A stretch of 30,733 bases of DNA from contig NW_003314292.1 of assembly GCF_000143415.4 (NCBI RefSeq), forward strand, positions 1,816,221-1,846,953, in the 5' to 3' direction. The DNA comes from Selaginella moellendorffii (Eukaryota > Plantae > Lycopodiophyta). The notes beneath the pieces are model-generated. The model was not told the DNA's origin, did no database searches, and saw only the letters and a program-made list of their open reading frames with translations. Made by a program: the position numbers and the translations under genes. Below, in pieces: positions 11,153-30,733 of the stretch (positions are counted from its first letter, which is position 1; every line of letters starts with the position of its first letter).

Positions 11153-13441
11153 ACCATTAGGAGAAAAACTTACAAGTTGTGGGATTTTGCATCTCACAAG
11201 GCTCTTGTAAGCACAGACATCATGTTCAACAAAGATGACTCAAGATCCTTCTTTCATTATTGAGACTCGACTTGTTCCTTTGATCCCACTTATGGGAGAT
11301 GGTCCACTCTTACCTCCACCTCAAGATCCTATTCATGAGTTGCCACTAGAGATTCCATTGGGGAATCCTCCACTTCTAGACAGTTGATGCTCCTCTAGTC
11401 GAGGATAGGCCTGGAACACCTCCACCACTTTGTCGACATCATGGCATGCCTGATCCAATGCTAGTTCTTGATCACCCCTGGGAACATCGGCCCTCATTGA
11501 AAGTCCAGGAAAATGCTGAAGCAGATGCTGCAGAGCTTGATAACTTTTGTGGCCTTGTTGACATCGGCATCCCCATGACCTATGATGAGGCTGTCTCACA
11601 TCTTGGATGGAAGCCATTGTGGAAGAAGTTGCTTCCATTTGGGTTAATGGAACTTATGTTCTAGTTGATTCAGCGCCACTGGGACAACGTGTTTTGGATC
11701 CAAAATGGAGTTTTTCCAAAAAGTATGGGAAAGATGGTCAGGTTATACATTATAAGGCATGGTTGGTTGTTTGCGGTTTTTGCCAAGTCCATGGCCTTGA
11801 CTACAATGAAACATTCTCACTGGTTGTAAAAATGGCTAGCATCCATACCCTTTTTGCACTTACGGCTGCTTGCAAATGGCAAGTCCACCATATGGATGTC
11901 AAAATTGTATTTTTGAATGGGGATTTGCAAGAGGACATCTATATGCATATACCTCCTGGTTTTGAGGATGATGTTGCCCCTTGTGGCCCTATATGGCAAT
12001 TGGGAAAGCTTTGTATAACAAGCTCCTGTATTTGGTATCAAAAATTTTATTACGTGCTCAGGGCTTTCATCACTACCATGTGTATGTGAATGGTCATGCT
12101 AAGAGCATGCTTATTGTGGCCCTCTATGTTGATGATTTGCTCATCATGGGTGATGACACCAATGCCATTGCTACTCTAAAAGCTGCTCTCAACCAGCAAT
12201 TCCAAATGAAGGACCTTGGCCAAGTCTCCTACTTTCTTGGCTTTGAAGTCACCCGCAATCCTGAGTTTGGTGGCTATATGCTTAGCCAACGACGTAAAGT
12301 CAAAGTCTTACTGGATCCATTTGGTATGCGTGATTGCCATCCCGTCAAGACCCCAATAGTTGTTGGTGCTATTGACCTCACAATTGAACAATTTGGTGAG
12401 CCTCTACCCACTAGGACTCCCTATCAACATCTCATTGGTTACCTCACATATTTGGCCTTGATGACTCGCTCTAATATCACATATGCAACTTGCCTTGAGT
12501 CAATACAACACATCACTAACCACTATATATTGGCAAGCTGCCAAGCATATCGTGAGATACCTCTAGGGCACTATGGACTACAGCATTACTTATTCAGGGG
12601 GTGATGCATCATTGATATGCTATATAGATGCTAGTTTTGCCAACAACAAAGGCCATCACTCTACTTCTAGCATTTGACTTTCCTTCTCAGGAGGTGCCAT
12701 ATGGGCCTCCAAGTGACAATCTGTGGTGGCACTTTCTAGTGCAGAAGTAGAGTACATTGCACTCACTACTAGTAGTAGGGACGTGGTCTGGGCTCGAGGG
12801 TTACTTGCTGAGCTGGGATGTGCACAAGCTGGCCCCACTACCTCTTGGTGTGACAACCGAAGTAGCATTGCCATGTCCAAGAACCCTGTCCACCATGCTT
12901 GCCTGAAGCACATTGAAGTCCAATTTCACTACGTGCATGAGTTGGTTGACGGTGGCACCCTGGCCATCCAACATCTCAGGACACAGGACATGCCAGCCAA
13001 CCTTCTCACCAAGCCATTGCTCCTACACGACAGATTTGGTTTGGTGAGTGGCTTTAGTTTGGGGGGGAGTGTTACAACACACTTTGCCATGTAGACATTA
13101 GGGTTTTCCTATTCTGTCGGTGCGCTTTGATCAGCCCTGTGTATGGAGTCCCAGAAAGTCTCGACGAAGGCTGGAGTGATACTGGTGCCCGAGGGGCCCA
13201 GGCTGGGGTCAGCAGGAGTGAGCAAGCCGCTGAAGACGAAGTCATCAATCGTCACGTTGGCATACGGCTTGTAGGGATACTTGTTGAGCTGCAGATAGTC
13301 GAGGTCCACCACACAAAAGTCCCGGACAGTATCTGGATCGGAAGTCAAAACTTGTAGAGTAGACATAGACGCATACAAGACTGCAAAACAAAACAAGAAC
13401 GTTGCCATATGGTTATGTCGCTGGATTTGGAGGGGATCAAA

Positions 13442-14490
13442 CTACATACCTTTGCAAGGTCCAAGGTCTAGAATATAATGCAGCTTCGAAAAACATATGT
13501 GCTGCCACGTTGCTCCCAACTTTAGCAAGTGGATGATAGCATGCAAACGTTGTAAAATCTTTTTTGCTTTCTCATTGGCCTTTAACTTCTGCCTCGCCGC
13601 AAAGAGGCCAAGGATCTCTTGGTGAGTATGCCTGGAGTTGCATGGGCAACATTTCTTAAATAAACAAAAAGGAAGAAATCTTGAAGATGGTGTTGCAGCA
13701 TTGATTGAAACCGCAAAGGATGGAACAATTATTGATTGTTGCTGTGTGACTTGCTTGATTTTCTCATATGAGGCTTGAGCATTCTTCTTGGACTTGATTT
13801 TGTTGGCATTGTTGCTGCTACTCCTCCATCCAAAGCAGCTGATGAGCTTGTTGGAACTGAGATCCTGTTGATTGTCCTTCATCTCCACAGCAAGAACTTG
13901 ACCCATGGGTTTCCAAATTACATATTTTTTATATCCCGGCTTTGTATAAAACGTTTCGTGAAAACCAAACAAATGAGTCCTCTACATGCAAACATGACTA
14001 ACATATCTTGAATGTTGTCCCTGTCCTGGAGATCACTGCGCACGGCTGCGAGAACCTCAAGTTCTAGGAAAGGCATCCAACATTTAAGATATCTTGGTAC
14101 AGTTTTGGTCAAAATGAGTCGTTGTTGCTTGACTGCGCATGAAAAAATGACCTCTGAATCAAGAAGCGAGTGAATCATCTACTACCAGTCAATGGACTTC
14201 TATGATGATACCATAACCTCATTGTTGTAAGATTGAGAGCTGTTCCAAAAAAGCTTGAGATACCTGTTGCAAGACCGAACTTAAACCAAAACACTTTCTC
14301 ATACCCAATTGCTCTCCATTACGAGCACTTGCCAGCATGCATTAGCCGTTGCTTTCGTCAAAAAGCTCACAGCTGGGTTGGACTCAGTCTGCAAAGAAGA
14401 GCCTTAGCGCTTATGTAGACTTGGCACGTTCACTAGTTCTTGCTAGCGAGTGTGGCTTCCCGTAGATGCTACCAAGTAATTCTTCCTTCT
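13442..14490 (-). pseudogene. Decayed coding region, possibly F-box/F-box-associated
   Basis: Weak motifs only, in different frames: EELLGSIYGKPHSLAR, FACRGLICL, YVIWKP. Includes a 176-aa ORF at 13442-13972. Confidence 0.25.
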
Positions 14491-14531
14491 ATCACTTTTG
14501 ACTTGGTGATGACATGAGAACTCGCTTCTGG

Positions 14532-15180
14532 GGCGAAGAACAAAAGAAGCTGGACGTGCAAGTCTTCACCAAAGCACTGTCCAGCAGTAAGGTTCTTTTA
14601 TCTCTTCCTCTTTGTGGCAGGTACTGCATGGTTTTTGATCCCCTCGATGGTATAGATTGCAGCATAAACGGTGAGAAAATGGTGGATTAAAAGATGGAAA
14701 GTCAGGTGTTGTCAGTGATGTCTTACACTGGTGGATACTGCTTATATGGAACCTTAAGCAGCTATTTCCTTCTTTTGGCTTGAGTTTAGAGCATGTTGAA
14801 ATCCTTATTGGCTTGTTTTGAGTATAATGTTTTGCAGTGGGATGATTGAGATTGCTAAGTTTCTTACGGGCAAAGTCTCTGGAGGGTTTGTATGATTAGA
14901 AATAACTGAATATGTTTCTTTTCTATTTCATACCGTATGGTGGCAGATGTTCACAAGACTTCACTCTACGGTGGCTATCCTGCTGATAAAAAAAAGTCCA
15001 TTTCCAGAGTTTCGTTTTCTCCTTTCACCATCTGCAGCCTTTTGTTCAAGGTTTTAAATCAAGCAGGCACGTAAGAACTCTTTTCTTTCGTACATCTATT
15101 ATTTCTTCTCTTGATTTACAGGCATTTGACATTGTTCGAATTTGGAAGCTTTGAAGACGTTGAAGAGATCAAAGCTCTTA
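14532..15180 (+). pseudogene. Cytosolic fructose-1,6-bisphosphatase pseudogene
   Basis: Collinear motifs: GEEQKKLDV/VFTKALSSS (14532), YCMVFDPLDG/IDC (14622), GYCLYG, MVADVHKTSLYGG/YPADKKSP (14937), FGSFEDVEEIKAL (15141). Intron remnants are present. Not in the ORF track. Confidence 0.88.
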
Positions 15181-18100
15181 GGTTCCTGCTGGATATCTTT
15201 ACAATTTGATAACGTCAAGCAAAGGGGCATCTTTTGAAAAAAACAAGAAAGAGGCTTAGGGCAATGTATATATATTCTAAAGCTTTATATGTATGTATAT
15301 ATGTATGTATATATATACATGTATTACCTTGCCTAAATAATATATTAATTATAATATTATAGTATATAAACCATCCATTTGGGACCAAGCCCATATGTAA
15401 TGTGTGGGTCAAAATGTATGGCTACAATGTTATATACTAATATTGTATAATTAATCTAATAATTATCAGATTACTTTCAATTCAAACCACTCGCTCCTGT
15501 ATATAAGCTAGGGTCAATTGAATATATATATTTTATATTCCATTCTATATTCCATGGACTCATATTAAAGGGGAACTTTAATTGTCCCTAAAGAGTGTTT
15601 GGATTTGGGTTTTTGGTTCAGATGTAACTTTTACATTGTCTAGATTTCACTTTTCTTATAATTTTTTAATTTCTTCTCTTTTGTAGCTTTTATCCTTTCA
15701 TTCATTTTTATGGTAGAGCAACAATTTCCTTCTCCTCCTTTTTGTAATTTCTTGATACTATGTAGTTGCAATTGAACAATCAAATTTGGTTAATGACGGC
15801 ATTTATGATATGTGGTATAGCTTCTGCTCTTACTGCCAATCCCCATATGCAGCCTGCTGCCAATAGCACTTTTAAATGAAGAAGTACTAAAGAAAAAGCA
15901 ATATAAATATTTAACTTTTGTTAAAATAGTAGTAAAACATAATAAAAATAATAATTATAGATATATATTTTAGCATGGAAGGAAGAGTCAAATTGAAAAC
16001 ATGGTTAAATATTATACACAAAATCATAAGTAAAAATAATGTTCATTCTATATTGATAAGAAGTAAATTTTTCACTAAATCTCATAGAGAACATAAAAAA
16101 TTTAGATGCAACAGCACTAGCTCAAAGAGGAATAAGAAATACTCATCCATGAGGATTGTGAGGTGTCCTCCTAGCTGTCCCAAGATATGTTGCGCTCAAA
16201 TTGGAGTTCCATGCACCTGAGGAGTATAGTGATGGATCATATCAAATGTAAGCTCTTGGAAGATGAGGATAGAATCAACAAGGTTTGGTCTCAAGAGGGC
16301 ATTTCAAACCTCTACAAAAAAGATGGCATGGAAGAGTCATTTATAGAGTCATACTTGGTTTTGTTAGGGTTTAGGGTTTATTAGCGGCCATTCTCACGAT
16401 GGAGTGATCACTAGAATTCATGGTCAACGAAGTGAGTGACAAGCATTGCTGCTATGCTATCATTTGTACCAACATTCTCCTACTCACTAGCCATAGATCT
16501 TAGGGGTGTTTAGCCTTCCAGGCAAGATACATGGTGGCTTACATCTATTCCAAAGGCAGGCTCATAGGGATCTTTCCCAATGACGATGAAGTTGCGAGAT
16601 TGGGAATGTCAACCATGAGCATGTCGTGATCCAAGCTCAACCTTTTCTGCTTGACAATGTGATTCAAAACAAGAAAAAATAGAAGAACTTCTTGAAACCA
16701 ATAACTATTCAATTTCAAGTAAGCATTTGCGTTTTTCATCTTTCTCTCAGTCATATCAAATTTTGGATTATCATCCTCCAGTCACTCATGCGATAGGACC
16801 ATTATCCACATCCTCCCTCACCTTCTTAGTGGTAGTATTTCAACATCACTGCCTTCAACCCAGCAAGGCTTGAAGGATCCAAGATCCCATTTTGCCATGA
16901 TGGATCAAGAGTCTTGTGTCCAACGATCACTACCTTAATTTCTTTTTTCAACCATGTGGACTCTAGAAGAATATCTTTGATGACTTTATTGAAAATGACA
17001 AGGTAATTAAATTAGGTTGTTTCATAATAGACTATTTATATTATGATTGTGTATGTGAGAATAACATTGTTGGCAACAAAGTGAGTTGTTACACAATATT
17101 CATAAATAAATATATAGTAATTAAAATATTTTTAAAAAAAATTGAAATTTTTATTACAAAATAGTCGTTCAATAACATAATATGATGTCTCATTCTTGAC
17201 CTGTTTTAATTTTTGAGGATGCTATGTGTCATTAGAAACCCCATAAATTCCATCTATAACAACCAAATATGAAATAAAATTTATAAACCTAAACATATCC
17301 TCATTTATAATATAATTAATATAAAATAATTATTAAAAAAGTATAAATTAAAAGAGTTACAAGGAAAATTACTTATAAAATGACCTATAGGACAATTTTC
17401 TTTGCTATATATATATATATTAACTAATTTATTTATTTATAAAGTTTTTAAAAATAATTTTCAATAATAAATTTATTAAGAAAAATAAATATTGGTAGCA
17501 TATATTATATTTTATATATATATAAAACTATTATTCTTTAATATAAATTTGTTAAATTATTCTAGAAAATCTACAATCATTTTTAAAATGTGTAAACTAT
17601 AAGGAACATATAATACTCTTACACTTACTTTTTTTATCTTTATATTTAATTTATCTTCCCACTAGAATGAAACTAATTTTGTATCTATTAATGTTAGGAA
17701 AACTAAGTTTTACATGTTTAATTATAAAAACAAAACTAAATATATTTTAAAAAAATTCATTGTGAAATTTAGTTTTAAGGGATTTCAATTTAGTTTTTCT
17801 AGAATTTTACATTTTATATATGAAATTAAATGGCACTTTTATACTTTGATTACATAGAAAAATTTACAGTTAAAAACTTTTCAATATGGTTAGATAAAAC
17901 TTTTTATGAATAGATGATTGAACGAAGTAAATTAATAGTAAATATTTTGTGAATTTTTTAACTTAAATTTACTTTTAGTTATTTTATTAATATAATTCTT
18001 CTTTTGTCAACTATAGGAGAAAAGATGAACTAAAAAGTACTTTTTAATTATGTTTTAAATATATTTTTATATTTAGTTATTTTTGTAAAATTCTAATTCT

Positions 18101-20203: not shown

Positions 20204-20479
20204 TTAGATGGTGGTGCATGCCAGAACGTTGGTGGAGTCTGTCTGCTGGCAGCAAGCAGGAGTCCCTCCGCACTTGCTACCCACATTTACCGCACAATTT
20301 GCAGCATTGACAGTCACAAGTGTACCAGGAGGTGCAGCAGGGAAATTCGAGCAGCAGTAAGAAGTGGAATCATTTCCACAAGTTTGGTTGCCCTGTCCCA
20401 AGGCAGGATTGAGAAAGAGAGCAGCACTCAGGGCCAAGAATGTGGCAATAAGCTTAATTGAAGAAGAAGAAAAAGCCAT
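20204..20479 (-). CDS. Small secreted 8-cysteine protein with hydrophobin-like spacing (91 aa)
   Basis: ATG at 20479; predicted signal peptide MAFSSSSIKLIATFLALSAALFLNPALG. Mature part is C-X7-CC-X18-C-X7-C-X5-CC-X10-C-X3. Intronless and GC-richer than its AT-rich flank. Confidence 0.8.
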   Translation of the reverse strand: MAFSSSSIKLIATFLALSAALFLNPALGQGNQTCGNDSTSYCCSNFPAAPPGTLVTVNAANCAVNVGSKCGGTPACCQQTDSTNVLACTTI

Positions 20480-21096
20480 GATTGTAAGAGCAGCTGAATG
20501 AGAATGGGTTTGTCTCTTTGGACGCTTAGAATTTATTGAGTTAAGATTGTCCTTCTTCAAGGGTGTAAGTTGTATGATCGTCCTTTGTCATCNNNNNNNN
20601 NNNNNNNNNNNNNNNNNNNNNNNNNNNNNNNNNNNNNNNNNNNNNNNNNNNNNNNNNNNNNNNNNNNNNNNNNNNNNNNNNNNNNNNNNNNNNNNNNNNN
20701 NNNNNNNNNNNNNNNNNNNNNNNNNNNNNNNNNNNNNNNNNNNNNNNNNNNNNNNNNNNNNNNNNNNNNNNNNNNNNNNNNNNNNNNNNNNNNNNNNNNN
20801 NNNNNNNNNNNNNNNNNNNNNNNNNNNNNNNNNNNNNNNNNNNNNNNNNNNNNNNNNNNNNNNNNNNNNNNNNNNNNNNNNNNNNNNNNNNNNNNNNNNN
20901 NNNNNNNNNNNNNNNNNNNNNNNNNNNNNNNNNNNNNNNNNNNNNNNNNNNNNNNNNNNNNNNNNNNNNNNNNNNNNNNGTTAGAGCATGATCTCCAGAA
21001 AACGAGTGAAGTGCAGCCAGTGAGAAATGCAGCTGGACACGAATCAACCTCCATTTTTGAGCCTGATATAATAGTATAGTGTTCTATATAATATTA

Positions 21097-21099
<3 letters not shown>

Positions 21100-21172
<73 letters not shown>
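21100..21172. repeat. (TA)n microsatellite
   Basis: About 36 uninterrupted TA/AT units. Confidence 0.97.
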
Positions 21173-21178
<6 letters not shown>

Positions 21179-21512
21179 TTATATCAATATTATTTAATAT
21201 ATTTATAATTAAAAAAATTAAACACTATTTAAATGTGTCCTATGTTTTAAAACTTTTATCAATGGGAATAAATTAGATTTTCCTATTCCATTTAAATCTC
21301 TAAAATTCTCTACATATTGTAATATGCTTCTAACATAAATGATTATATCTCAAATGATAACATACAAATAAGTGAAATGTGGTTAAAGTATATATGTTGA
21401 TGACTTCATTCAAAACGTTTTAACTATGCGTGTTTATAGGACTAGGGTTACAGAGGGATGGAGAAAGGTATGGGGTTAGCGGGCCTAGCTCTTGCACATT
21501 CCCTCCCATGTC

Positions 21513-23900
21513 ATGGCTGTGGTGCCGGCGGCTCGCAGTTCGCCGTTTTTCTCGAGAGAAAGGAGAGGCTATGGCGCTTCCAGCACCAGCGGCGAAGGAA
21601 TGCAAGGAAGGACTTTCACAAAAACAGGCAGCAGTGGCTCAGAGGATCAAAAAATTCTCAGCTGGAACAAGATCAAACAAGAGGAGGACAAGAGGAAAAA
21701 GGAGATGGTGCTGGAGCTCATTGCTGCATTGAAGGCGGCGAGCGGCTCAAGAGCGATCGAGAGGGGAAGGCAGCTCCATGCCGCAGCGATTGAGAGTGGC
21801 AACGGTTCCAACTTCTACGTTGCGAGCTCTCTCGTGAGCATGTACGCGAGATGTGGCTGCATGGGCGAGGCTCGCTCGGTGTTTGATGCCATGGAGCACC
21901 ACGATGTGGTTCTCTGGACAGCGCTCATGCTCGGCTACTCCAAGAACGGCCAGGGAGAAGTGACTTTGGAGCTCTTCTCGCGGATGCTGCTCGTCGCAAG
22001 GCCGAATTCTCAGACGTTTCTGGCTGTGCTCAAGGGCCTTTCGAGCTTGGCTGCAAGGGAGGAAGGCAGGAGATTCGGTGGAAAGGTGGTGAAGACAAGG
22101 ACTCTGGAAAGAGTCATGGCTGTCCACTTGCAAGCCGAGGGATTTGGATGCGAGCTGGATAACTTTGTGGCGAGCTCGCTGGTGGACATTTATGCCAGGT
22201 GTGGGAGCATGAGGGATGCTCGCAGAGTTTTCGATCGAATGCCGAGCCACAACTTGGTGGCCTGGACGGCATTGATCCTGGGCTATGCTACGAACGGGGA
22301 GAATGAGGTTGGCCTCAGGCTCTTCGCTCGGGTGCTTGGCGAAGAAGGACGCAGGACAGATTCGCAGGCTTTTGTTGCTGCGCTCAAAGCTTGCACGGGG
22401 CTGACGGACAGAGAGGTGGCAAACGACTCAGGTGTAAAGATCCAGTGCTTGGAGAAAGGCATGGCTGTGCATCGTGAAGCTGCCAAGAGTGGAGTTGCAA
22501 CGGAGATGTTCGTGGGAAGTGTCCTGGTGGATACATACGCGAAGTGCGGAAGCATGGAGGACTCCCGCATCGTATTTGAGAAGATGGTGGCTCAGGACGT
22601 GGTCTCGTGGACCGCTCTCCTGTTTGGCTACGCGCAGAATGGCGAGAGCGAGCTGACCCTTGGGATGTTTGAGAGAATGAAAGCCTCGGGGTGTGCACCG
22701 AACGCTCAGACGTTCGTGGCAGTTCTTCACGCGTGCACGAACTTGGCTTTGCGAGAGGACGGCATTGAAGAGGACGGCAAAGTCCTCAAGGTGAAAGCTC
22801 TGGAGAAAGGCATGGCTGTTCATCGGGAAGCTTTCAAGGGCGGGTTTGAGCCGGACATCTGTGTGAGCAGCACGCTGGTGGATATGTACTCCAAGTGCGG
22901 CAGCGTCCTCCAGGCTCGCCGGGTGTTTGACAGGATGAAGCGCCACGATGTGGTGTCATGGACAGCGCTCATACTCGGCTGTGCTCAAAACGACGAGGGA
23001 GATATGGCACTGGAGCTCTTCACAAAGATGAGGCTTGAAGAGAAACGTTGCCAGCCCGACGATCAGACGTTCGTTGCCGCGCTGAAGGCCTGCTCCACAG
23101 TTGCATCGCTCGAGTTTGGAAAGAAAATCCATGCAGATATATGCCGGTGTGGACTCGAGGCTGGCAGGCTTGTCACGAACTCGGTGGTGGATTTCTACGG
23201 CAAGTGCGGGAGCATGGTCGTGGCTCACCAGGTTTTCGATTCCGCTAGAACAAGAGCCCGGGATATAGTCTCGTGGAACTCGCTCATCACAGGCTACAGC
23301 CGCCACGGTGAAACCGACGCCGTCCTCGAGCTCTTTGCAAGGATGGTGGAAGAAGGCTTCCAACCGGATGGCATCACCACACTGGCGGTCTTGAACGCGT
23401 GCTGCCATGCCGGGCTGGTTGAAAGAGGGAGGAAGCTCTTCCAGGAGATGTGCTCCCGGAAGGCTGCAAGCGTGACTATGGAGCACTACCACGTCGTGGT
23501 GGACATGCTAGGCCGGGCAAACAAACTCCAGGAGGCGGTGGAGATGGCGGACTCGATGCCTTTCGCAGCGAATGTGGTGACATGGACCATCGTGCTGAGC
23601 TCGTGTCACAAGTGGAAGAGCTTGGAATTTGGAAGGCTGGCGTTTGAGGCACTGGTGAAGCTGGATGAGAAGCAGGCTGCTACTTACGTTCTCATGGCCA
23701 ACATCTATGGAAGCTTGGGCATGGTTGAGGAAAAAGCTAGAGTTCATGCGATGAGCAAGAGGATTGGTGCGTGGAAGAGGGGATCAGTGGTAGTCAATCT
23801 CGATTCGTTTGTCAATTGTGGTGATCATCCTCAAAAGGAAGAGGAGAAGAACTATTATCAAACTTGTGACAGACATACTTGTAAAATAGAACTTCTATAA
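21513..23900 (+). CDS. PLS-class pentatricopeptide repeat protein with E extension, no DYW domain; probable organellar RNA-editing factor
   Basis: Intronless ORF, first ATG at 21513. Repeated SSLVxMYxKCG / DVVSWTAL / PxxQTFVAxLxAC motifs; C-terminal EHYHVVVDMLGRA...ATYVLMANIY...; the E+ region is truncated. Confidence 0.93.
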   Translation: MAVVPAARSSPFFSRERRGYGASSTSGEGMQGRTFTKTGSSGSEDQKILSWNKIKQEEDKRKKEMVLELIAALKAASGSRAIERGRQLHAAAIESGNGSNFYVASSLVSMYARCGCMGEARSVFDAMEHHDVVLWTALMLGYSKNGQGEVTLELFSRMLLVARPNSQTFLAVLKGLSSLAAREEGRRFGGKVVKTRTLERVMAVHLQAEGFGCELDNFVASSLVDIYARCGSMRDARRVFDRMPSHNLVAWTALILGYATNGENEVGLRLFARVLGEEGRRTDSQAFVAALKACTGLTDREVANDSGVKIQCLEKGMAVHREAAKSGVATEMFVGSVLVDTYAKCGSMEDSRIVFEKMVAQDVVSWTALLFGYAQNGESELTLGMFERMKASGCAPNAQTFVAVLHACTNLALREDGIEEDGKVLKVKALEKGMAVHREAFKGGFEPDICVSSTLVDMYSKCGSVLQARRVFDRMKRHDVVSWTALILGCAQNDEGDMALELFTKMRLEEKRCQPDDQTFVAALKACSTVASLEFGKKIHADICRCGLEAGRLVTNSVVDFYGKCGSMVVAHQVFDSARTRARDIVSWNSLITGYSRHGETDAVLELFARMVEEGFQPDGITTLAVLNACCHAGLVERGRKLFQEMCSRKAASVTMEHYHVVVDMLGRANKLQEAVEMADSMPFAANVVTWTIVLSSCHKWKSLEFGRLAFEALVKLDEKQAATYVLMANIYGSLGMVEEKARVHAMSKRIGAWKRGSVVVNLDSFVNCGDHPQKEEEKNYYQTCDRHTCKIELL

Positions 23901-24096
23901 ACTCTCTCCATTTTGTGTCAAGCTTTCTTTTGGTAGGAAAGAGGTTTTTGGAAGTGAAAGAAAATGGTTTGAGAACAAACCTGGCGGATAGCATGACCCA
24001 GTGACGTGCATATGTAGGTAGTCATGAATCAGCTAGAACTGTAAAGGTGACAATCTTAAACAAGTCATTTGATCATACAAACCACGCAGGAGCCCC

Positions 24097-24105
24097 TATA
24101 TAAAA
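24097..24105 (+). promoter_or_regulatory. TATA box of the second hydrophobin-like gene
   Basis: CCTATATAAAAG about 65 nt upstream of ATG 24166. Confidence 0.6.
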
Positions 24106-24165
24106 GCCCTTGGTGATCAGGACTATGAATCCATCAGTGCTCCATATTTACAAAAGAGAGTGTCA

Positions 24166-24407
24166 ATGGCTTCCTCCACTCAGTTTGTTCTTGCATTCTT
24201 TCTAGTGGCAATAAGCCTTATCAACGTTGAATCCCATGATTCAGAAAAATGTAGCGGGGGTACTATTGTCTGTTGCTCCAATATCGATTCTTCTAAAGAT
24301 CTTGTTGATATCGATCTTTAGGATTCAAAAACTTCGCCTGCATACTCAATCAGGTTAAGTGTGAAAACACTAAAATCTGCTGCAAGGAGAAATGCAAAGC
24401 TATTTAG
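24166..24407 (+). pseudogene. Second hydrophobin-like secreted 8-Cys gene with a 1-nt frameshift
   Basis: MASSTQFVLAFFLVAISLINVESHDSEKCSGGTIVCCSNIDSSKDLVDIDL* (stop 24319-24321) continues in another frame as GFKNFACILNQVKCENTKICCKEKCKAI* (to 24407). Restored pattern: C-X6-CC-X21-C-X6-C-X5-CC-X3-C. Confidence 0.75.
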
Positions 24408-24627
24408 GCCAATCAAGCACCAAGAAACAAAAGCATAAATAAATTCCTCTTAAATCAATAAATCGACAAAGCTTTCTTTCTCAATGTTTTTGACCTAGTG
24501 CGTTTCTACTGAATTTTTTTTATCAACTATTTTAAACAAAGCTGCATTTATCGTTCATTACATAATGAGTCTGAACTCGCAGATATCCAAAAACTCTTAG
24601 CTTCTAGTCAATGATCATAATTTCCCT

Positions 24628-27601
24628 TCAGCTAGATACTCCGCCACCGCCGCCACCACCACCACAACCACCGCCGCCACCACCACCACCTCCTCCGCCA
24701 CACCCGCCACCACCTCCTCCGCCACACCCGCCACCACCTCCTCCGCCACACCCGCCACCACCTCCTCCGCCACCTCCTCCACAACCTCCGCCTCCGCCTC
24801 CGCCACCTCCTGCTCCACCACATCCCCCACCTCCACTGATGCCACACCCGCCTCCACCAGCACCACCTCCGCCACAATACGATCCACCTCCATCATACCA
24901 GCACTGGCCATCACCACCGAAACCATCACCACCACCAACATCATCGCCACCGTCACCACCGTCGCCCCCGTGCTCTTCCCCGTGCTCTCCCCCGTGCTCT
25001 CCCCCGCCCTCTCCGCCACCGCCTCTGTCCTTGCGGCGACGGCGATCAACTGTCACAGCACCTGGTCAAGCAGCAATGTTCTTAGAATTTGCGTGCAAAG
25101 AAACTTGTTTCTCACCCCAATGATCTTGTTCTTCTTCTGAGACCATCACTCGTTTCCTCGTATTCGTCCACGAAGGAATGGCTTTGCCGAGCATATCCGA
25201 CACGGACATGCTTATGGTTGCCGATAAAAGAAGCACAAGCAGCACATCCTCATTGCGATCAATCTGAGACAAATCATATCACAAAATTGGAGCTAAATTT
25301 CGATTAAAGTCTACCTGCATGCCACCAGACCGCCAGTTGAAAAGAGCTGTCGCCTTGCCTTGAGGAGCGTCTCTTGTGAATCTTACCATTGTCACAAACC
25401 ACGCTTCCTGTCGCTCGGATGCACCAGGAACAGCAAATTCCAGGTGACGACCCGAGAAGAGCATGATCTACAATCAAGTTTTCCAGAGAATCAGCCACTA
25501 TATCAGAGAATCTGTACCACTATATATGCAGACTAACTCACCGGACAGTCGTGGGATTTCATTTCAACGCGGAGCTGTGGTTTCATGTTCCAGTGCTTAT
25601 CCTTGACATCTCTGTTAACAGTTAAAATAGCCTTCCCGTTCATTAGAGACCATCTCCTAGACACTGAAGATGGTTTCTCTAGTTGCCATGCAGATCCTAG
25701 AATTTCACCTGAGAAAACAAAGCAACACTATAAACCTTTTGCAAAACATGTCCAGAAGATGCTCATACCATTTACGGAGCCAGTGTTGTAAGAACCGTCG
25801 TATGTCCACCCTCCTTTGTGAACATGGATAACTTTATCGGTGTCGAGAATGCTCCTTAGCAAAAGCCCCCCACCCTTGTATCTAAAGCAAAAGTTGCCAC
25901 ATTAGTTCTAGAAAAAGTGGCTCAATTTGCAAACCTGCAACGGACGACGAAGGATTCGTTTCTGGTGTGATCGAAAACATTCCTTGTTATCCACATGCCT
26001 TCTCTGTGACTGTGGAGGCTGTGAGTGGCACAGTCGTCTCCCGTGTCTCTCACTCTCACGCTTCTGAAGAGATAAGGCGCAGTGACTGGAGGAGTAACGG
26101 AGATGTAAACCAGCACCGACACTTCTCGGTCCTTCTTTGTCTCCAGCAATGGAAACCAGCCGCTGAGTGATTGCGTTTCCGAGCGGATGACAGTTTTCCA
26201 TGGAATCAGGAGCAGGCCCACGGTTTTGGATATCAAAAAGCGCTTCTGTCGAACTGCGAGCACCAGCCCTTCGGTGGAGAGTTCAGCTGTTATGGTTGAG
26301 ACTACGCTCAGATGAGAGGAAGCCTTCCCTCGTTGGCTCTCGAGATTCAGATACTTTTGATGGTTTAACGAGGTTATCACGTAGTAGATGGTCCTATCGT
26401 CTGGCAAACCTCTGGTACCTCTTACGGAGAGATGAACCTGCATAAATCGAATAGAATCGGATCAGACGAGATTGACAATAAGACTGCGAACTCCAATACC
26501 TGAATAGTCTTTCGCTCAGCCAAGTCATAATCGTTTTTACTAGCGAGCCTGGCGAGTTTGGCTGGATCATAAGCAGGTGTTTTGGGAACGGATGCTGGTG
26601 GCTCCCCTCTGTACATGCACCCTGCTTTCTCGTATGGAAGGCCATACGTGTCTTCCCACATAGATCGAGTCTTTGTGAATCCATTGTCCAGTTTTCCTCC
26701 GGAATCTCGGTTGCTATCTGTGTCGTCATGCTCGAAGATCCTTCCCAGTACCTGTGTGAGATCGTTGTGGTAGCTCACAGGGTGAAGCTGATGTGTATGC
26801 CATATTAAATCGATGTCGTAAGAGGGAACGAAAAATGTTGACGTGCCAGACGTGCGTATGAGATGGAGAAACGCCTTGTAACGTGCAACAGCAACTACCA
26901 AGAAGCTCTCGCCCAGGTAATGCGGCTCAGAAACCTGCATACTCAAAGTTAATTTGCTTCCAAGGAAAGATCATCACTTGCCTGATAGTAGAAACTTTTC
27001 TGCCTGAGAGCTGCTTCTGCCAAGTCGTAAAAGATATTGGTTGGTCTTTCGGTATATCGTCTTGTTAAGTCTCCACCGTAAATGTCAAGAGTGTATGGTT
27101 CGTCTGGAAAATTCGAAGCCCATGTACTGGCGCTTTGTTGGAGATCATTTCTGTGCCTCGCCAAAGAAGGTCCCTCCACAATTTTACCGAACAATCTCTT
27201 ACAGTCGTCAGCATATTGAACCTAGTCAGACACGTAACTTTGGTAAATTGAAGTGGACAGATAATGGAATAGCCACACTTACAGGATTCAAGCGATGGCA
27301 ATGCCATATCCAGTCGCAGTCGAGTGGCGGGAAAAAATTCCCAGAAGAATTTGCTAACAGCGGGAGGCAGCAGTACTGGTACCTAGAATCCAAGAAGAAA
27401 TCAGCAAACTAGATCAAACAAGTAAATATCTCACCTCTCAATTGCCCTTTCCAGAACAGGCCTCTCAAACAGCTTGAAATTGGCATGTACCAGCGAAAGG
27501 AACTCCAACTGTGATTTTGCAGCTGCTACCACATCCAGAGAGAGCGTAATTTCTTGAGCCTTGCGCCATTCATTCACTTGATTCACGGAAAGCGAAGCCA
27601 T
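24628..27601 (-). CDS. Glycine-rich domain-containing protein (GRDP1/2-like, DUF1399), multi-exon
   Basis: EWRKAQEITLSLDVVAAAKSQLEFL, PPLDCDWIWHCHRLNP, RQKSFYYQ|VSEPHY, VPSYDIDLIWHTHQLHP, HDDTDSNR, GCMYRGEPP, KATALFNW, then a C-terminal GGGGC repeat tail ending in TGA at 24628-24630. Confidence 0.88.
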
Positions 27602-28812
27602 TGTTGTAGTCTGTGAGTCGAGCACACTGCTTGGTCTGCTTAAATAAGCGGGAAGAAGCTGCCGGCTTTGACTCTTCGAAGGATGCGTAGAGAGTTCGGA
27701 AATTCGATGTGTCTTAGAGCTTTTGGATGTTCAGGCTGGTTGACGGCGACGGCCAATGATCTCGCAATCCACGCGGGGCTTGTAGAGAGTTTCAAGATCA
27801 GTGTGTATCATTGACTGGCGTCGCAGGATCGTCGAACTTGCTTTTTTCGTCAAGTCGTCTTTACCAAGACTTTTTTTGTTACTGTGTCAAAGGATGTGCG
27901 TCCACGATAGCCTGAAACAAACATAAAAAAAAAAAAAAAAAATTCAGCAGGAGAAGTTTCGACTGTACTTTCAAGGGAAATCCACGTCCTTTTGGGCCAA
28001 GAGAAGCTCAAAACGAGGAACGAGAAGTACTCTTCCATGTCCTTTAACACTCGCTACTTCGTGCCTGGGTTGGAAAAAAGAAACGGCACAAAATTAGAGA
28101 GACTGTCCTCAGCGAAGATCTTTCCTTACCATGGAGGATGGATGGATACAACACATCCGACCTGTACATCGGGAGAAAGGCTATCGAAAATAGCGGTGAC
28201 AGCTTCAAAGGTCTCCAAAACNNNNNNNNNNNNNNNNNNNNNNNNNNNNNNNNNNNNNNNNNNNNNNNNNNNNNNNNNNNNNNNNNNNNNNNNNNNNNNN
28301 NNNNNNNNNNNNNNNNNNNNNNNNNNNNNNNNNNNNNNNNNNNNNNNNNNNNNNNNNNNNNNNNNNNNNNNNNNNNNNNNNNNNNNNNNNNNNNNNNNNN
28401 NNNNNNNNNNNNNNNNNNNNNNNNNNNNNNNNNNNNNNNNNNNNNNNNNNNNNNNNNNNNNNNNNNNNNNNNNNNNNNNNNNNNNNNNNNNNNNNNNNNN
28501 NNNNNNNNNNNNNNNNNNNNNNNNNNNNNNNNNNNNNNNNNNNNNNNNNNNNNNNNNNNNNNNNNNNNNNNNNNNNNNNNNNNNNNNNNNNNNNNNNNNN
28601 NNNNNCTATGTCTCGTTACCTCGGACGTGGTATCACTATCGATCGGATCAAGGCTAGAATCCACCCTGCAAGAGAATGATCGCTAGAAATGAAGAATAGA
28701 ATCACTGGAAATGCAGCTACCTCGTGCTTGCCTTGCACCCAACATCGTCGTCGTCGTCGTCGGCATCTGAGATTCCATCCTCCAGCTCCAGTGGCCGTCG
28801 CGGGCGCTTCAT
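27602..28812 (-). other. Upstream exon set of the GRDP locus (N-terminal extension or separate decayed gene)
   Basis: ATG at 28812 gives MKRPRRPLELEDGISDADDDDDDVGCKASTR|VDSSLDPIDSDTTSE, with a telo-box just upstream. Homologous to 390-1400. Frameshifted in 27640-27910; includes an N gap. Confidence 0.5.
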
Positions 28813-30225: not shown

Positions 30226-30733
30226 CCATGCCGGGCTGGTTGAAAGAGGGAGGAAGCTCTTCCAGGAGATGTGCTCCCGGAAGGCTGCAAGCGTGACTAT
30301 GGAGCACTACCACGTCGTGGTGGACATGCTAGGCCGGGCAAACAAACTCCAGGAGGCGGTGGAGATGGCGGACTCGATGCCTTTCGCAGCGAATGTGGTG
30401 ACATGGACCATCGTGCTGAGCTCGTGTCACAAGTGGAAGAGCTTGGAATTTGGAAGGCTGGCGTTTGAGGCACTGGTGAAGCTGGATGAGAAGCAGGCTG
30501 CTACTTACGTTCTCATGGCCAACATCTATGGAAGCTTGGGCATGGTTGAGGAAAAAGCTAGAGTTCATGCGATGAGCAAGAGGATTGGTGCGTGGAAGAG
30601 GGGATCAGTGGTAGTCAATCTCGATTCGTTTGTCAATTGTGGTGATCATCCTCAAAAGGAAGAGGAGAAGAACTATTATCAAACTTGTGACAGACATACT
30701 GTAAAATAGAACTTCTATAAACTCTCTCCATTT
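30226..30733 (+). pseudogene. 5'-truncated near-identical duplicate of the PPR gene 3' end
   Basis: Matches 23405-23913 (offset 6821). The only difference I saw is a 1-nt deletion near 30700 (RHTVK* vs RHTCKIELL*). Continues past the window end. Confidence 0.95.

Follow-up and report, generated by a model that had tools for sequence, protein, structure and literature searches.

Organization of the locus

The window, as the whole 30,733-nt stretch of Selaginella moellendorffii DNA analysed here is called, forms the final 30.7 kb of scaffold GL377596.1. It holds two hydrophobin-like small genes (Table 1). One is the 20204 gene of subfamily H2, which is intact. The other, referred to below as the window copy, lies in a segment bounded by Ns (20980-28221), with an ORF for a PPR protein as its left neighbour and a convergent GRDP gene as its right neighbour, as an earlier note on this DNA had described. 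The Gly-rich C-terminal tail of the GRDP-like gene corresponds to a PPPP/GGGG repeat at ~24637-25056.

Table 1. Features of the window and their coordinates
Feature	Position	Strand	Details
Hydrophobin-like gene, H2 (20204 gene)	20207..20479	-	Intact, 91 aa; same window
PPR gene, left neighbour	21513..23900	+	ORF; handle for retrieving other units
Conserved promoter block including TATA box TATATAAAA	24011..24110	+	TATA at 24097-24105
Transcript-like contigs, unspliced and genome-colinear (extent)	24129..24574	+ (strand inferred)	Logan contigs, runs X1 and X2
First piece of the ORF, with signal peptide (24166-24234) and Cys1-Cys3 (C-x6-CC)	24166..24321	+	ATG 24166, TAG 24319-21
Frame-break zone	24309..24320	+	-1 frame TGA 24306-08; 10 nt absent between 24316 and 24317; G>A at 24320
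Second piece, -1 frame: Cys4-Cys8 (C-x6-C-x5-CC-x3-C)	24321..24407	+	28 codons, TAG 24405-07
GRDP-like gene, right neighbour	24628..27601	-	Called gene in L004 at 13116-16089 (-), PF07173 and PF25335

The window copy is split between two reading frames. Its ATG starts MASSTQFVLAFFLVAISLINVES, followed by a mature part beginning HDSEKC, and the leader consists of MASSTQ, a 13-residue hydrophobic core and V-E-S, which fits V-x-S, ahead of the likely cleavage site. Both the signal peptide and the TATA box claimed in the earlier note are thus present. This first piece is 51 aa long and has 3 Cys in its mature part. The second piece reads GFKNFAC...CKAI, with 5 Cys in 28 aa and a C-terminal C-K-A-I; when the 84 nt of this piece were shuffled, none of 20,000 shuffles gave at least five Cys without a stop, and the piece is thus no product of chance. 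As read from the sequence, the read-through product would comprise ~80 aa and, like a class I hydrophobin, would be small and secreted by way of a signal peptide. The C-CC-C-C-X5-CC-C skeleton reported earlier exists across the two frames, with 6 residues between C4 and C5, and no single ORF contains it, since three Cys lie in frame one and five in frame two with the TAG between them. The TGA upstream in the -1 frame confines any frame switch to the frame-break zone.

The sole match in an Rfam scan of 23800-24700 was a chance-level one to mir-927 (E 0.41, 21.8 bits vs a cut-off of 60), and a Pfam match of the second piece to Toxin_23 (E 0.11) was rejected as noise from cysteine spacing.

At the scaffold end, the 508 nt that close the window (30226-30733) duplicate the 3'-terminal PPR sequence (23405-23913) with 99.8% identity and stop just short of where the next small-gene cassette would begin. 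The NCBI PPR model (789 aa, L004:10001-19188) spans the window copy and the entire GRDP gene to reach this repeat. It looks like a mis-joined model, with an assembly break within a tandem repeat.

Repeated units and paralogs

The protein of the PPR gene is 100% identical to one from S. moellendorffii assembly GCA_000143415.2. Further loci were retrieved via this PPR gene, whose 90%-identity cluster has three other members. The S. moellendorffii assembly contains at least four units with the PPR / small gene / GRDP arrangement: one in the window, L001 and L002, which lie 30 kb apart on GL377733.1, and L003 on GL377705.1. The hydrophobin-like small gene is unannotated in every unit. An annotated 388-aa gene model in L002 (12075-13930, minus strand), which has no Pfam match, overlaps the small-gene ORF of that unit on the opposite strand.

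The small genes in this slot make up subfamily H1 and are of two types. Type A comprises the window and L001 copies, which are near-identical (~97% identity in aligned columns). Type B comprises the copies in L002 and L003. The L002 copy (L002:12061-12321) is an intact gene for an 87-aa protein with the pattern C-x6-CC-x18-C-x8-C-x5-CC-x10-C, and the L003 copy is interrupted by a 174-N gap, its 45 visible codons being open.

The window copy belongs with the H1 genes both by homology and by its position between PPR and GRDP genes. Its first piece shares 51% identity with the type B paralog over residues 1-51 of the latter (E 7e-16), and its second piece aligns with residues 65-76 (E 4e-4), so that both pieces are colinear with the paralog. 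The DNA is likewise colinear with L002 over the promoter, CDS and 3' UTR. In BLASTP, the first piece aligns with the 20204 protein only locally, to the second C-x5-CC motif of the latter. The earlier note had called the window copy a paralog of the 20204 gene. Membership in the same family stands, but the nearest relative is the intact type B gene in the same slot.

The 20204 protein and the type B paralog are 28% identical over their full length (E 9e-5). The 20204-type gene is intact in three units, namely the window, L001 (3103-3372) and L002 (1220-1489), always on the minus strand. Its CDS is identical in L001 and L002. Relative to these, the copy in the window has two amino-acid replacements and an additional codon, and there is no synonymous difference. 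The ~5 kb between the 20204-type and PPR genes (L001:4598-9622 and L002:4199-9208) are 97% identical between these two units and have no counterpart in the window, where a 387-N gap is found (20593-20979).

Type A and type B are deeply diverged. The Nei-Gojobori method (NG86) gives dN 0.39 and dS 0.89 for type A vs type B, with an omega of 0.44 overall and 0.21 for the mature part, which points to former coding constraint; this is the dN/dS comparison among copies that the earlier note had proposed. The flanks tell a different story. When the window is compared with L002 in 100-nt bins, identity is 95-100% in the PPR gene up to ~23780 and mostly 91-99% from ~24733, vs 57-86% in the ~900-bp cassette between them (window 23780-24730, L002:11700-12760), and the boundaries are sharp. 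Because a divergent cassette sits inside near-identical flanks, the A/B split must be much older than the flanks appear. This suggests that the flanks may have been homogenised by gene conversion or that the cassette may have been exchanged.

When type A (window) is compared with type B (L002) within the cassette, the promoter block is the best-preserved 100-nt stretch, at 86% identity vs 57-71% in the adjacent bins.

These comparisons bear out the proposal of an old, locally clustered and diversified family, with type B genes in L002 and L003, 20204-type genes in three units, and a dS of ~0.9 between types whose flanks are 95-100% identical. The earlier note had made the existence of other family members a test of its reading, and such members are found in L001, L002 and L003.

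The lesion in the window copy

DNA alignment with L001 and L002 places the loss of 10 nt in the frame-break zone, at a position ambiguous by a few nt. The deletion is unique to the window copy. The nearby G>A change generates the TAG that ends the first piece. The earlier note had attributed the split to one missing base in a T run; the alignment instead gives 10 missing nt together with this substitution.

The other type A copy is broken elsewhere. L001 retains the 10 nt, reading DIDLVALLGFKNFAC, and lacks one A in the run at window position 24364, which shifts the frame after Cys5. This 1-nt deletion is unique to L001, sits in an A run and is known from the assembly alone. The break at a different place in L001 indicates decay rather than recoding. 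The window copy thus bears the marks of a non-processed pseudogene, with its 10-nt deletion and TAG, the independent 1-nt deletion in its sister copy, and no rescue by splicing in the contigs described below, and loss of function would be expected to follow.

The remaining indels between type A and type B measure 3, 12 and 21 nt, all multiples of three. The 21-nt (7-codon) deletion lies after 24389, in the Cys7-Cys8 loop, and is common to the window and L001. Type A also differs in composition, having 8 K+R and 8 D+E and a GRAVY of -0.11 vs +0.45 for type B, in agreement with the earlier description of the window copy as more charged. The short loop and the higher charge predate the frameshifts: the type A lineage had lost the seven codons and become more charged and less hydrophobic before either copy was broken. 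The preservation of frame by the other indels, together with a dN/dS of ~0.4, makes the loss of type A recent. For most of its history, type A was thus a coding gene under constraint, and it has been disabled recently, and independently, in two copies.

Transcript-like contigs

Logan contigs from two runs of two different studies, X1 and X2, cover the window copy; the RNA nature of these runs is a guess. X1 contributes one 440-nt contig (24135-24574) with a depth of 62.5. X2 contributes contigs at 24129-24260 and 24231-24504 with a k-mer depth of 2244-2416. The X1 contig and the second X2 contig (274 nt) bridge the lesion, and there are no gaps in either run; the unspliced sequence so covered amounts to ~380-440 nt. 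Depth is zero in both runs on the flanks within 23900-24620. The runs look like transcriptomes, because with 26-41 Mb of contigs in total they cover only this island. In the raw RNA run X19, sampled at ~12%, 0 reads were found.

The contigs reveal neither the strand nor the true ends of a transcript. The contigs have their left ends ~32-38 nt past the TATA box, and AATAAA motifs lie at 24438 and 24457. The X2 contig at 24129-24260 (record 2, 160 nt) runs antisense down to 24129 and then sense from 24233. Self-primed cDNA synthesis at the 5' end of an mRNA would give a fold-back of this kind, which weakly suggests a plus-strand RNA with its start near 24129. On the other hand, the signal may come from a minus-strand 3' UTR of the convergent GRDP gene.

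The X1 contig carries C at 24458, as L001 does, and therefore represents a slightly different allele in which the 10-nt deletion is still present. This A/C difference falls in the second AATAAA (24457-24462); the X1 contig with C reaches 24574, and the X2 contig with A stops at 24504. The difference could reflect a choice of poly(A) site, these being contigs without true ends.

The contigs also bear on whether the frame change is real. The earlier note had left it as either a recent loss or a sequencing error, and an assembly or sequencing error, or a bypass by splicing, editing or -1 frameshifting, would allow a full 8-Cys protein to be made. The second frame is open and contains all five cysteines, and the break adjoins a short T run, as this explanation would have it. 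However, the lesion is bridged without gap or joint in contigs of two studies, which argues against an assembly or sequencing error, and 10 nt rather than 1 are absent relative to L001 and L002. An intron was rejected as the cause because the contigs are colinear with the genome and show 0 joints. Programmed -1 frameshifting was rejected because the zone at 24309-24320 holds no in-frame X XXY YYZ slippery heptamer and because the break in L001 lies elsewhere, which leaves the two copies with no recoding signal in common. Error or bypass is thus very improbable, and of the two possibilities in the earlier note it is the loss that survives.

A probably inactivated gene that appears to be transcribed

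Taken together, these data make it probable that the window copy is a recently inactivated type A (H1) pseudogene of a small secreted 8-Cys gene, and that it is apparently still strongly transcribed. The 10-nt deletion and the G>A change end its reading frame after codon 51. Translation would then yield a 51-aa precursor and, after cleavage of the signal peptide, a 28-aa peptide with three Cys. Because such a peptide lacks Cys4-Cys8, the four-disulfide core of the ancestral protein could not form, and the copy would not be expected to work as its intact relatives do. The very high apparent transcript depth sits less easily with a pseudogene, since dead genes seldom show it, and could mean that the truncated product, or the RNA itself, is put to use. 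The window and L001 copies may be either alleles or paralogous units.

In an alternative reading, the truncated ORF encodes a functional new short secreted peptide (28 aa, 3 Cys), or the RNA itself has a role. The k-mer depth in X2 and the conservation of the promoter block are in keeping with this, as is the finding that only two residues differ between the window and L001 in the first 51 codons. However, the L001 frame stays open for another 18 codons before it enters a different tail, so that no common short product is conserved. Over the CDS, four codons differ between the two copies (five base changes), giving three amino-acid changes and one stop with 0 synonymous changes, and the density of change is about that of the flanks (about 2-3%), the level to be expected if there is no constraint. 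For a secreted peptide, an odd cysteine count is also unfavourable. A functional short peptide or RNA is accordingly unlikely, and a transcribed pseudogene remains the preferred reading of the window copy.

Resemblance to fungal hydrophobins

Several lines of sequence evidence connect the family to class I hydrophobins. Pfam PF01185 (Fungal hydrophobin) aligns with the type B paralog from end to end (profile positions 1-79 of 79; E 3.6e-4, 21.6 bits) and matches the L003 fragment (E 1.1e-3, 20 bits). The gathering threshold of 23 bits is not reached by any family member scored. The 20204 protein matches PDB entry 2fmc (EAS) with E 0.012 and Pfam Eas with E 0.21. The pieces of the window copy, searched separately and each in its own frame, gave no Pfam hydrophobin match, nor did the type A copy of L001.

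Searches of the PDB (177,635 sequences) at E<=10 were consistent in what they returned. All seven matches of a family profile are hydrophobins, the best being EAS (E 0.076). The L001 type A copy has two matches, both to class I hydrophobins (E 0.06 and 0.075), and all three matches of the first piece of the window copy are fungal hydrophobins (E 1.1-3.6). In the ESM Atlas, the feature matches went exclusively to hydrophobin clusters (score 0.85). Some of the similarity lies beyond the cysteines. After the first CC pair, the L001 copy shares ALLG with SC16-type proteins, in the segment that is deleted from the window copy, and the 20204 protein has YCC, PA..PG.L and GS.CG in common with EAS.

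Class I hydrophobins follow the consensus C-x5-8-CC-x17-39-C-x8-23-C-x5-6-CC-x6-18-C. The loops of the type B paralog (6/18/8/5/10) all fall within these ranges. In the window copy, C1-C2 (6) and C5-C6 (5) are in range and C4-C5 (6) and C7-C8 (3) are outside; the 3-residue C7-C8 loop was rightly noted before as short.

Broader searches returned no relatives. An HMMER search with the family profile against 1.84 billion representative proteins gave 0 matches at E<=1e-3, and no match came from word-indexed searches for homologues of the 20204 protein or of the 51-aa piece. The family members are themselves absent from the 15-billion-protein collection, and the blank HMMER search therefore says little.

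Hydrophobins fold into a beta-barrel with four disulfides (C1-C6, C2-C5, C3-C4, C7-C8), and structure models added no support for such a fold. The AF2 model of the type B paralog has a pLDDT of 41 and is unusable, and that of the mature 20204 protein reaches 64.7. With the latter model, Foldseek ranks HFBI, EAS and HFBII best, at E 2.4-8.4 and TM 0.38-0.44 (HFBI, E 2.4 and TM 0.44), and five of the top nine weak matches are hydrophobins. Z values from VIA-align of the same model (pLDDT 64.7) against hydrophobin chains are below 2.2, and an ESM Atlas shape search with it found nothing. The superposition on hydrophobins that the earlier note had set as a criterion is not convincing with this model.

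One explanation for these results is convergence, in which the family would consist of plant-born cysteine-rich peptides that mimic the hydrophobin Cys pattern and would be misnamed as hydrophobin-like; this is compatible with the window copy being a pseudogene. No hydrophobin match reaches its curated threshold, and a large share of such scores comes from cysteines. The 20204 model (pLDDT 64.7) gives VIA-align Z < 2 against hydrophobin chains, the Atlas shape search is blank, and there are 0 relatives among the 1.84 billion proteins. Against convergence stand the exclusively hydrophobin matches in the PDB and the top feature clusters in the ESM Atlas, the matches beyond the cysteines, the end-to-end Pfam alignment, and the share of hydrophobins among the top weak Foldseek matches. 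Convergence is a possibility to be taken seriously, if a somewhat doubtful one. With modest confidence, we lean toward true homology to fungal hydrophobins, through a putative link that is sub-threshold at the level of sequence. If it holds, the ancestral function may have been that of a secreted amphipathic protein assembling at interfaces, as the sub-threshold class I resemblance would imply.

Evolutionary implications

Hydrophobins are generally considered to have arisen in fungi, and a full-text literature search found no paper that reports them from Selaginella or describes their transfer from a fungus to a plant. The small genes recur in units flanked by plant PPR and GRDP genes and are therefore not contamination. 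Should true homology to the class I hydrophobins of fungi hold, the family would have been acquired or retained long ago and would be neither a contaminant nor a one-off insert. The locus might then represent birth-and-death evolution of a true hydrophobin family in a vascular plant, with type A decaying independently twice while still strongly transcribed; this combined reading is tentative, its chances being a little short of even.

The broken copy reveals deep within-plant divergence under coding constraint and the ongoing loss of members. Because the small genes are unannotated and missing from the 15-billion-protein collection, protein-based surveys would miss the family entirely.

Comparison with known systems

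Plant nsLTP and 2S albumin-type proteins resemble the family in being small and secreted and in having eight cysteines. Their pattern, C..C..CC..CxC..C..C, lacks the double CC arrangement of this family, and the Pfam, PDB and Atlas searches gave no match pointing to them.

Fungal class I hydrophobins (PF01185; SC3/SC16, EAS, RodA and MPG1) are likewise small and secreted and share the C..CC..C..C..CC..C arrangement. They differ from the family in that its host is a vascular plant, its Pfam scores lie under the cut-off, and it is known here from sequence.

Within the family, the 20204 gene (H2) shares with the window copy a signal peptide, the eight-Cys skeleton and, as the earlier note had observed, CCSN and a terminal C-x-x-I*. 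It differs in having C-x8-CC, an 11-residue C7-C8 loop and an EAS-like best match, and in being intact.

The closest counterpart of the window copy is the type B paralog of L002. The two occupy the same PPR/GRDP slot and have in common the MASSTQ.VLAFF signal peptide, the TATA box, the promoter block, the C-x6-CC start and the C-x5-CC...C-x-A-I* end. In the type B paralog, which is intact, 10 residues separate Cys7 from Cys8 and the mature part is hydrophobic, whereas the window copy has a loop shorter by 7 codons, is more charged and is frameshifted.
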